A program made the translations under genes and the position numbers. The notes beneath the pieces are model-generated. The model worked only from the letters and a program-made list of their open reading frames with translations, was not told the origin of the DNA and did no database searches. DNA of 64,000 nucleotides from Zancudomyces culisetae HAW-14-8. Its lineage: Eukaryota; Fungi; Kickxellomycota. Below, piece after piece: positions 39,734 to 43,012 of the stretch. Positions within the stretch are counted from its first letter, which is position 1. Every line of letters starts with the position of its first letter. The DNA lies in contig JBNJNM010000010.1 in the NCBI GenBank assembly GCA_052426225.1, positions 496,001 to 560,000 on the forward strand, in the 5' to 3' direction.

Positions 39734-42700
39734 TTACCAAGCCAACTGAGATTTGTCAGAGCAGTTGTTTGATTTTAGGAATTTTTTAGGGTCAGAAGAA
39801 ATGGCGGCACGGAAAATAGATTTTCCATACAGCTTGTACATTTCAGTGACACCACCACCAGAGATGAGACGTTCTTCCATAAGACTTAGAGTGAAGGGGA
39901 AGGAAACACCAGCTACAGAGACGGTTCTGTTTGGAAGATCGATATCAACTTGGGCACCATCAACAGCCAATTCATAGAACTTTTCATCCTTCAAGCAAAT
40001 TCCCAAGAGAGCCATGTTGGGTTGATTTCTGGAGTAAATGAAGGCAAAGGATTTGGCAATGACGGCCTTTGTACCAGCACCCTTCAATGCACGAGGAGCT
40101 TCCTCACGACTGGATCCAGAACCGAAACCGATTCCAGCTACTACAATATCAAATCCTTGTTTAACACGTTCTCTAAATTCTGGGTGGGTGTGTTGGAAAG
40201 CATGAGTACCCAAATCCTCATCACTAGTTCCAGGCATAAATTGGGCAGGAATGATAGCATCGGTATCAATGTTATCACCAAATCTTTGGACTTTTCCAGA
40301 AATGATTGAAGTAGAGGCGGCCTTAGTAGCTGGAGCGTTTTCGGAGGCTGATTCAGCAACATTATCAGCAGCAGTAGTGGAGGTAGCAGCGGAAGCAGAG
40401 ATAAAGGTTGGGTTGGGTTCAGAAATGACAAAATCTTGTGGGCCTTCAAGCCATTCAGAAAGCATTTTCTTGTATCTATCTTTGTTAACCAAGTTGACAA
40501 GATCGGTAGGATCAGTAATCTTCATGCCAAATGATGATGCGGCTACAGTGGCGGAACTGGCCAAGTTACAGATAGAGCCAGGTCCCATTCTGTTCTTGAA
40601 GTTTCTGTTTTGTGATGACAGCCATACCTCACCCTTTCCTGCAATATCTGCAGCTACTCCAAGACAGTATGAACATCCTGGTGCACCAATATCAAAGCCT
40701 GCTCGTTGATAAATGTCAGCCAATCCCAATCTACGTAGCTTGGCCAAAATTGGAACTGATCCTGGTGTTACTCTTCTGTTCTTTCCTTCGACTGGAACCA
40801 ATCCCTTGTTAAGTCCTGCTTCCAATACCAAAGCTGCAAAGATCAAGTCCTCTTCTGCTGTTGTACATGCTCCAATAAACACTCCATCCAATTCGGTTCC
40901 TGCTGCTTGTGATGCGGGAACTACATTGTCTGGGCTTGGATATAGGGCCACCAATGGCTCAATCTTGGACAAATCAATGATGTGTGATTCGGCATACTCT
41001 GCATCCTCGTCTGGTTTAAAGTACAACGCCTTGTTTCTGTGTTCAGGGTTCTTTCTATGCGAAACAAATGCTGCTGTTATGTTGTCAGCCTCACACACTC
41101 CGGCAATTCCTCCAAATTCTGTTGCCATGTTTGCACATGCAAATCTTGCATCACATGACATATACTTGAGTCCTGGTCCTGTGTATTCCACTGCACGTTC
41201 AAATGCTACGGTATTACGTCCCAATGTTCCCAAAACTTGCAAGATGATATCTTTTCCTCCTATTCCAAATTGTGGTTCATTGACAAAGCGGATCTCCACA
41301 GTTTCTGGTACTTGAAGCCATGTTTCTCCTGTAACCATAGGCATAACTACGTCAGCTGCTCCCATTCCAATTGCCAATGATCCTACTGCTCCAGCTGAAC
41401 ATGTATGTGAGTCTGCTCCAATAATCAACTGTCCTGGCTGTGCTCTTTGGCGGTAGAATTCTGTGTGAAGAATTGTATAATTTGGCTTGTAGAAGTCTAC
41501 CAATTGTGCCTCCTCTGAGAACTTCTCTGATGCATCAACCAACTCCACTGTCAATGGTCGATCCATAATTCGTGGATCAACTGTGTGGTCAATTGCCAAC
41601 CAGAACCGATCGTTTCTGTGCACTCCTGGGTTTCCCATTTGTGCATATGTCTTGTCCATACCCTTCCATGTCAGTTCTGATGCAAGTGTCCAATCTACTT
41701 TTACACATACCATATCTCCTGGTTTGATATTTCCTGGTTCTTCCAAGCCAATAGCGTTGTGCAAGATGATCTTTTCAGAGATTGTCAATCCTCTTCTTCC
41801 TGTTGGTCTATTAAGCAATATCTCTCTTGGAATTTCCAAGTCCTCCGCATTCAACCCGTTAAGCATTGGTCCCAACGCTCTAACTACAGCATCTCCCATC
41901 TGTGTAGTTGTACATTCGCCTCCCAAATCTCTTGTGCGCATTCCATATCCATTGAGCTCATCATCATCCAATACCTTTCTCACTGCTTGCTCAATAGCAT
42001 TTGCCTCTGCCTCTCTGCCTAGTGAATATCTCAACAACATGGCTGCTGAAAGTATTGACCCAATTGGATTGGCTACTCCGTTTCCTGCAATATCTGGTGC
42101 TGATCCGTGAATTGGTTCGTACATTCCAAATATTGGCGATTTCCCGTCAATTACTCCCCCAAGACTGGCTGATGGCAACAATCCTAATGACCCTGGAATT
42201 ACACTGGATTCGTCAGACAGAATGTCTCCAAACATATTCTCAGTCAAGATTATACCATTAAGTGCTCGTGGATTCTTGACCATCAACATTGCTGCTGCGT
42301 CTACCAAATGGTGCTGCAACTCCACTCCTGGAAATTCTGCTTCAATAGTCTCTGTTACTACTTTTCGCCACAGTCTTGATGTTGCCATTACATTAGCCTT
42401 ATCAATGCTGTGAATCTTCTTGTGCTCTTTTCCTGCTGTTGCCAACAATCCGGCAAGTCTGGCTACTCTTTTGACCTGATCCACAGAGTATTCTGTAGTA
42501 TCCCATGCCTGTCCATTGGCATCAGTCTCTTGTCTCTTTCCAAAATACACTCCCCCTATCAATTCTCTAATCATCATAAATTCGGCTCCCTCTGCTACCT
42601 CATACTTTAATGGACTGCTCTTCAACAATGAATCCGATGCAAATGACATTGGTCGCAAGTTTGCATATAGTTGCAGTTCTTGTCTTAAATCCAACAACCC

Positions 42701-43012
42701 TTGTTCTGGTCGTGGTCCCAGTCCTTTGCTTGCATCATTGGCATCTACTGGTCTGGGCCACTGAGGTCCTCCTACTGCTCCAAGCAAGACGGCTTGGGCT
42801 GATTTACATGCTTCAAGTGTTGCTTGTGGCAATGGTACTCCCTGTGTGTCTATTGCCTTGCCTCCAAAATCATACTCGGCAAAATCAAGAACCCCACCAA
42901 TTGCATTGGACCTCAGTTCACTGACCTTTTTAAGTACTTTTATTGCCTCTGCGGTTACTTCTGGACCAACACCATCACCTGGAATCACTGCTATTTTAAT
43001 TAGGTTTACCAT
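39734..43012 (-). CDS. LEU2: Fusion of 3-isopropylmalate dehydrogenase (Leu2/LeuB) with an aconitase-family [4Fe-4S] isomerase, large and small subunit (LeuC/LeuD-like, not the Leu1 type)
   Basis: Residues 1-~385 carry [48 protein letters not shown] and [12 protein letters not shown]. Residues ~408-840 carry [29 protein letters not shown] and [11 protein letters not shown]. After an Ala/Ser/Thr linker come [22 protein letters not shown] and AKSFAFIY. The ORF is uninterrupted. Confidence 0.93.

Follow-up and report, generated by a model that had tools for sequence, protein, structure and literature searches.

In model fungi two consecutive steps of leucine biosynthesis are specified by separate genes, LEU1, in which the large and small subunits of the isomerase are fused, and LEU2, which encodes the dehydrogenase. 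The closest described counterparts of the protein reported here are, for the dehydrogenase, fungal LEU2 and bacterial LeuB; and, for the isomerase, the Leu1/LuA proteins of yeast and Aspergillus, E. coli LeuC-LeuD, and the two-subunit archaeal IPMI MJ0499/MJ1277 and homoaconitase MJ1003/MJ1271. A LeuB-like and an aconitase-like enzyme also act as a pair on an alkylmalate in homotyrosine chain elongation (PMC8948627); unlike the fusion, HtyC and HtyD are the products of separate genes in a secondary-metabolite cluster, and they are likened to it by description only.

The window analysed here is a stretch of 64,000 nucleotides from Zancudomyces culisetae HAW-14-8 (contig JBNJNM010000010.1). Its reverse strand carries at 39734-43012 a single intronless ORF of 1092 aa, running from ATG to TAA with no internal stop, which the earlier note had described as a full IPMDH joined to an aconitase large and small subunit. 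A Pfam scan of the ORF matched all three of the families proposed there, Iso_dh (aa 6-376, E 6.5e-122), Aconitase (best stretch aa 472-704, E 8.6e-73) and Aconitase_C (aa 945-1009, E 3.9e-15). The ORF and its three domains are thereby confirmed, the domain boundaries agree with those first drawn, the small domain having been placed from about 40306, and all three of the cysteines claimed as Fe-S ligands are present (Table 1).

Table 1. Features of the fused gene, with positions in the window.
Feature	Residues	Position	Strand	Basis
Full ORF: LeuB-type dehydrogenase, aconitase-family large domain and swivel (small) domain in one chain		39734..43012	-	ORF and Pfam
3-Isopropylmalate dehydrogenase domain	1-384	41861..43012	-	TIGR00169, PDB matches, model, residues, tree
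Connector between dehydrogenase and isomerase	385-407	41792..41860	-	Homologue lengths and pLDDT
Aconitase-family large domain, short archaeal type	408-848	40469..41791	-	Profiles, residues, model
Span of the three [4Fe-4S] Cys codons	C716, C780, C783	40664..40867	-	C716 40865-40867; C780 40673-40675; C783 40664-40666
Flexible Ala/Ser/Thr-rich linker between large and small domains	874-899	40316..40393	-	pLDDT < 50; length variable
Swivel/small domain, archaeal LeuD/HacB type	903-1071	39800..40306	-	TIGR02087, 2pkp and 3vba alignments

The genes beside the fusion encode a proteasome beta2 subunit, a Zn2Cys6 factor and a PPR protein, and a local leucine gene cluster was accordingly rejected for this locus. 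No gene cluster surrounds the fusion at the Coemansia and Synchytrium loci examined.

The N-terminal half is predicted from its sequence to be an NAD-dependent 3-isopropylmalate dehydrogenase, acting as a homodimer. It scores 450 bits against TIGR00169 (cut-off 353.2) and keeps all the catalytic residues and the fold of LEU2 and LeuB: the IPM pocket (E103, L106 and L107, equivalents of Glu87, Leu90 and Leu91), three Arg (R110, R120, R149), Y156, K205, three Asp (D238, D263, D267) and, intact at aa 302-307, the NAD loop HGSAPD. The predicted model matches Thermus IPMDH 4wuo with Z 49 and rmsd 1.5. HICDH identity was rejected on profile scores and residues. The domain is about 60% identical to stand-alone fungal LEU2s and groups among them by species in trees that lack a Saccharomyces sequence and that, like all trees in this work, are quick IQ-TREE runs with SH-aLRT support only. 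What sets it apart from LEU2 and LeuB is the 700-aa aconitase module carried at its C-terminus. Since the IPMDH active site uses a Lys and an Asp of the partner subunit, a dimer bearing two isomerase modules is expected, and the isomerase would be dimerised through the dehydrogenase.

The C-terminal half has the Cys ligands, catalytic set, GSSRE serine and fold of an aconitase-superfamily [4Fe-4S] hydro-lyase. Residues D475-H476, H516, D534-S535-H536, N628, E632, N802-R803 and R808 are intact in the large domain, as are D918 and the GSSRE motif with catalytic S967 (40112-40114) in the swivel domain. With Leu1/LuA and LeuC-LeuD the module has the superfamily and catalytic set in common, together with the large-then-small order of Leu1, and the reaction is probably the same. 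Yet the name "LeuB-LeuC-LeuD fusion" proposed in the earlier note stands for its LeuB part and fails for its LEU1/LeuC part. The large domain scores 148 bits against TIGR00170 (leuC), for which the cut-off is 560, is 29% identical to E. coli LeuC and, unlike Leu1 and LeuC, is of the shorter archaeal type, with the canonical motifs HEVTS and GSCTN replaced by ASELTW and GACTT. It also falls in a separate clade from LeuC in the isomerase tree, for which fungal Leu1 was represented by E. coli LeuC and the TIGR00170 model. This clade is well supported and distinct in both trees; its signatures are xSELxW (ASELTW in Zancudomyces), GACTT and SQNRN, and a profile search revealed an identity gap between its members (about 44-70%) and proteins outside it (about 31-39%). 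Several residues near the substrate site are unusual, with Ser-Glu for the His-Glu of LeuC, GACTT for GSCTN and SSREE for SSREH.

The closest solved relatives, by both sequence and structure, are the archaeal enzymes: MJ0499 and MJ1003 are the best matches (E 1e-61), and the predicted model aligns with 4kp2 at Z 46.9 and with 4kp1 at Z 44.2. The swivel domain exceeds the cut-off of TIGR02087 (119 bits against 109). Unlike the archaeal enzymes, to which it is about 32-35% identical, the module is one chain and not two subunits, and its large domain scores below the cut-off for each of the best profiles (PRK00402, 314 of 385 bits; TIGR01343, 282 of 386; TIGR02086, 276 of 410). Homoaconitase identity was rejected both on score (TIGR00139, 199 bits against a cut-off of 530) and on residues, because the specificity loop of the swivel domain, QFMPG, which aligns with PYLRT of 2pkp, lacks the Arg of the homoaconitase small subunit. 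By these sequence criteria LEU1 and the isomerase half are not orthologues. The half falls within an archaeal-type aconitase clade (xSELxW/GACTT) that is uncharacterised, no measured activity having been found in the literature for any of its members.

The fusion is not an oddity of one genome. When related genomes were searched for the architecture, 106 of the 120 best homologues, some of them from transcriptome assemblies, proved to carry all three Pfam families in one chain; together with the trees described below, this marks the architecture as widely conserved and probably ancestral. In fungi the three-domain chain occurs in Kickxellomycotina, Dimargaritales, Entomophthorales, Syncephalis, Glomeromycotina, Mortierellaceae, Jimgerdemannia and Calcarisporiella, and also in several chytrids, Piromyces, Blastocladiomycota and Neolecta. 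Outside fungi proper it is found in Amoeboradix, Chromosphaera, Salpingoeca urceolata, Physarum, Ancoracysta and Petalomonas; because contamination of transcriptome records is possible, isolated protist records carry little weight. Seven longer homologues, one of them from Leptophrys vorax, add an N-terminal HMGL-like domain, for which the best models were those of IPMS in all four tested. An automatically named ESM Atlas cluster with the fusion architecture has 437 members.

Close relatives of the isomerase module are far scarcer in prokaryotes. A pattern scan of 185,579 prokaryote genomes gave only four close loci, about 50% identical, all in high-GC MAGs, one of which is assigned to Myxococcota. 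Each of the four encodes the large and small domains in a single chain, and in three a leuB-like gene is close by. In the Myxococcota MAG a PRK03437 leuB overlaps the start of the single-chain homologue by ATGA, and a gene of the LeuA/homocitrate-synthase family follows 2 kb downstream. Direct descent of the fusion from this leuB-leuCD operon was rejected, because the PRK03437-type leuB is only about 35% identical to the fused dehydrogenase and more distant from it than E. coli LeuB. Since this leuB was not its source, the fusion probably formed in eukaryotes.

What, then, does the fused protein do? We propose that LeuA, the product of a separate gene, would supply 2-isopropylmalate, which the C-terminal [4Fe-4S] module (large plus swivel domains) would convert via isopropylmaleate into 3-isopropylmalate; the N-terminal LEU2-type domain would then oxidise and decarboxylate this with NAD+ to 2-ketoisocaproate. 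The protein would be a bifunctional enzyme, presumably cytosolic as it has no N-terminal presequence, and its isomerase module would be a non-orthologous equivalent of Leu1 from a clade with close relatives in a few bacteria. Gene content fits this scheme. Profile searches of the Z. culisetae genome recovered two aconitase-family genes, namely a mitochondrial-type aconitase and the fusion; and four Iso_dh genes, the fusion and three that are IDH-like. A LeuA that scores over its cut-off and is a typical regulated IPMS, ILV3 and KARI are all present, and no other isomerase or canonical LEU1 candidate was found by these searches of one draft genome. With no other candidate for isomerase or IPMDH, the fusion fills exactly the two missing steps. 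In Mortierella sp. GBAus27b, moreover, it follows the genes for the AHAS large subunit, KARI and the AHAS small subunit in a BCAA cluster.

The claim in the earlier note that one protein performs both steps is supported as probable by the sole-candidate gene content, the LeuA fusions and the BCAA cluster. The bacterial operon and a distribution complementary to that of LEU1 also make leucine the best reading, and the conserved catalytic residues of both halves and the loop without the homoaconitase Arg give further support. Counted against it are the placing of the clade below all curated large-subunit cut-offs, the unusual substrate-site residues and the catabolic-looking paralogues. Read against the directly observed ORF, domains, intact catalytic residues, clade membership, gene content and gene context, the C-terminal half probably has isopropylmalate isomerase function (EC 4.2.1.33), and we consider it likely that the fusion is a bifunctional leucine enzyme for the isomerase and dehydrogenase steps, the isomerase substrate being deduced.

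The paralogues raise a different possibility, that the module is mainly a catabolic alkylmaleate hydratase converting maleate, citraconate or dimethylmaleate into the matching D-malate, with the dehydrogenase removing the product or serving as LEU2, and leucine isomerisation done otherwise. IPMI and IPMDH enzymes do accept such alkylmaleate and malate substrates, and in Eubacterium barkeri the dimethylmaleate hydratase DmdAB works with a 2,3-dimethylmalate lyase (DMML). Paralogues about 56% identical lie in apparently catabolic clusters in Aspergillus, Scheffersomyces, Backusella and Fusarium, where they adjoin a PEP-mutase/ICL-family lyase whose best PDB match was the 2,3-dimethylmalate lyase of A. 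niger (3fa3) in both cases tested; PrpD is also encoded at two paralogue loci, and PrpD or a Zn2Cys6 factor is often nearby. These Dikarya and Mucorales paralogues, clustered with a DMML-like gene in a manner recalling the E. barkeri system, are probably catabolic, and their context suggests that the lyase-linked copies would act as alkylmaleate hydratases. They form, however, a subclade separate from that of the Zancudomyces gene, and grouping of the Mucorales stand-alone copies with Mucoromycota fusions was rejected (p-AU 6e-31). The Zancudomyces gene adjoins neither a DMML-like lyase nor PrpD; its genome has no PrpD, and its sole PF13714 match is isocitrate lyase. That no other isomerase candidate was found in that genome, with the BCAA cluster and LeuA fusions pointing to leucine, leaves the catabolic role improbable for the fusion. 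The Zn2Cys6 factor beside the Zancudomyces fusion has the zinc cluster alone in common with the regulators at the Backusella and Pestalotiopsis loci.

A broader role in 2-oxoacid elongation was also weighed, in which, as happens in some archaea, LeuA and the fusion would also yield the lysine precursor 2-oxoadipate and perhaps the isoleucine precursor 2-oxobutyrate. It was raised because LYS2, which exceeds the TIGR03443 cut-off, and a LYS1-like gene are retained in Z. culisetae, whereas no homocitrate synthase, LYS4 or LYS12 turned up in its draft assembly, and because the nearest family to the module is archaeal HacA/LeuC, homoaconitase included. Set against this are the IPM-specific Glu/Leu/Leu pocket of a dehydrogenase that exceeds the leuB cut-off, the swivel loop without the homoaconitase Arg and the typical regulated IPMS. 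Assembly gaps, or salvage of aminoadipate from the insect gut, are simpler explanations, absence from a draft being weak evidence, and we hold such a dual role to be a poor prospect.

It is very improbable that one half alone is functional, for example with a vestigial isomerase, or that the chain is cleaved into separate enzymes. Halves of this architecture can decay or change, as an ascomycete subclade illustrates: there the HGSAPD loop has been lost from the fused dehydrogenase of all 23 sequences. In the Zancudomyces subclade, by contrast, both active sites are nearly invariant, the catalytic residues of both halves being conserved in 62-65 of the 65 fusions that are not of the ascomycete type, and the connector is conserved and predicted to be ordered.

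The joining of dehydrogenase and isomerase in one chain is confirmed. The best database match, the public Z. culisetae record OMH78463.1, is equally unbroken and, differing from the window at 5 of 1092 residues, is a second version of the gene. Synonymous third positions do switch sharply at about codon 811, from 74% purine before to 19% after; a chimera was rejected on this point, because ACO1, LeuA and the Coemansia orthologue of the fusion drift from 5'-purine to 3'-pyrimidine in the same way, and the switch lies off the domain junction. That an assembly or annotation artefact joined two adjoining genes, which the abrupt switch might favour, is scarcely credible when the same chain recurs in the 5-residue-different record and in more than 100 other species-level clusters, transcript-derived ones included, and the drift is genome-wide; misassembly is very unlikely.

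The evolutionary history of the bifunctional leucine fusion can be read most directly from the dehydrogenase tree. Stand-alone LEU2s of chytrids, Basidiomycota, Mucorales, Saitoella and Basidiobolus interleave there with fused forms along species lines. Monophyly of stand-alone fungal LEU2s was rejected with p-AU 8e-46, the group being defined by this trait but tested after a first tree had been seen. At least seven changes between fused and stand-alone states are required on a tree with many open forks. As fused forms also occur in Holozoa and Amoebozoa, this interleaving is more simply read as repeated fission, and the sequences suggest that such fission produced the stand-alone fungal LEU2s, the direction of change being deduced. 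Among the 120 best matches, none is named as a complete stand-alone LEU2 from Kickxellomycotina, Glomeromycotina or Entomophthorales. Mortierellaceae provide the clearest example: at the KARI-AHAS-LEU2 site of M. alpina, syntenic with the fusion locus of Mortierella sp. GBAus27b, there is a stand-alone LEU2, about 89% identical over its main exon, which then ends, with no aconitase remnant at the site. For M. alpina ATCC32222 a canonical LEU1 homologue is reported from another contig, in a study that does not mention the fusion (PMC8880518); the strain of the locus compared here may be another. The fused gene is probably ancient, early fungal at least and probably older, and we infer that several fungal lineages later kept the LEU2 half alone, using canonical Leu1. 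The separate LEU1 and LEU2 of model fungi thus look like a derived state.

Whether the two enzymes are physically coordinated was approached through the connector, whose anchor-to-anchor length is 49-57 residues in 76 of 88 homologues and whose motifs LEGLN and RP..RR are partly conserved. AlphaFold2 modelled the whole chain with mean pLDDT 87.6 and pTM 0.86; the connector is ordered (block pLDDT 86-94), and disorder is confined to aa 874-899 and the C-terminal tail. Such a connector is compatible with fixed docking of the two enzymes. Channelling of 3-isopropylmalate, which the earlier note had envisaged, is possible. It need not be invoked to explain why fusion was favoured: co-expression, with a fixed stoichiometry drawing the isomerase equilibrium forward, would suffice. 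More speculatively, and to our minds rather doubtfully, the fusion (with LeuA in some protists) might represent an ancestral eukaryotic leucine multienzyme, a rigidly docked dimer handing 3-isopropylmalate directly from an uncharacterised isomerase family to the dehydrogenase, and in Harpellales perhaps promiscuous enough to feed lysine synthesis.

Public databases contain the architecture under automatic names such as 'putative aconitate hydratase' and '3-isopropylmalate dehydrogenase'. The earlier statement that no enzyme of this architecture has been characterised agrees with the literature searched, in which no paper describing or testing the fusion was found, although a listing in the fungal gene-fusion survey of Leonard and Richards (PNAS 2012) is possible. 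Larson and Idnurm traced fungal LeuA to two origins and saw nothing out of the ordinary in the isomerase and dehydrogenase of Phycomyces (PMC2904702). If the present reading is right, that double origin would extend to the isomerase step, with the clade described here as a candidate second, uncharacterised isopropylmalate isomerase family. The fusion clade may also explain some cases in which surveys based on yeast LEU1 scored leucine synthesis as absent, as was done for two choanoflagellates (PMC4339202); the choanoflagellate S. urceolata has the fusion.

The paralogues are candidate partners for the fungal 2,3-dimethylmalate lyase, an enzyme whose pathway, to our knowledge, is not known. The intronless fusion gene itself offers simple material for channelling tests and a possible one-gene leu1/leu2 marker, and it is relevant to metabolic models of arbuscular mycorrhizal, anaerobic gut and insect-pathogenic fungi. 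Less unique than first thought, the fusion is of wider evolutionary interest: in many early-branching fungi and several protists it probably serves as both isomerase and dehydrogenase of leucine synthesis, a protein that yeasts and moulds appear to have split, using a different isomerase gene, so that the textbook fungal leucine pathway would itself be the derived one.

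The ascomycete LeuB-aconitase fusions form a second subclade, in which the NAD-binding HGSAPD loop of the fused dehydrogenase has disappeared from every sequence (23 of 23) and the substrate and metal residues are retained; this domain is possibly a pseudo-dehydrogenase, or one of altered chemistry. Zancudomyces and Coemansia genes favour purines at synonymous third positions near the 5' end and drift towards pyrimidines near the 3' end; in the Z. culisetae fusion ORF the change comes very abruptly, at codon ~811.

Z. culisetae has retained both LYS2 and a gene resembling LYS1, but searches for homocitrate synthase, LYS4 and LYS12 found none there. 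The genome also houses two ILV3-like copies of similar score, representing either a duplication or an uncollapsed haplotype. In Mortierellaceae, a branched-chain amino acid cluster unites AHAS, KARI, the AHAS small subunit and LEU2 or the fusion; in Basidiobolus, KARI adjoins LEU2.

Aconitase-module paralogues are clustered with a 2,3-dimethylmalate-lyase (DMML)-like gene in Scheffersomyces, Aspergillus, Backusella and Fusarium, often together with PrpD or a Zn2Cys6 factor; these clusters may represent a conserved catabolic pathway for fungal DMML.

Locations of the features discussed (G000, Z. culisetae genome; C, contig; L, DNA locus; P, protein)
Feature	Location
Ascomycete fusion subclade	P0078-P0115, e.g. 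L095:10001-13436, L096:10001-13415
Third-position drift	window 39734-43012; L001, L009, L104
LYS2/LYS1-like gene	G000:C6:158106-162461 and L109:775-1956
ILV3-like copies	G000:C19:40019-41111 and C21:2348740-2349852
Mortierellaceae cluster and Basidiobolus pair	L103:678-13433, L108:1468-7236, L102:5612-9219
Paralogue/DMML-like clusters	L097:8057-15333, L099:8269-14792, L100:6513-14161, L096:8218-13415
Four-part chains	L013:585-5261, L014:832-5259, P0112
Fusions outside aconitase-module clade	P0342, P0279, P0290, P0300, P0309

The 69% GC contig DATGOH010000281.1 (L016), which closely resembles locus L015, is labelled Fredinandcohnia (Bacillota) and is probably mis-binned. Outside the aconitase-module clade, P0342 fuses a LeuA-like domain to a large subunit, and chains with the small subunit ahead of the large also occur. 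Finally, Leptophrys vorax and metagenome contigs encode LeuA-LeuB-large-small in one chain of 1340-1819 aa, a single protein comprising the entire leucine-specific pathway.
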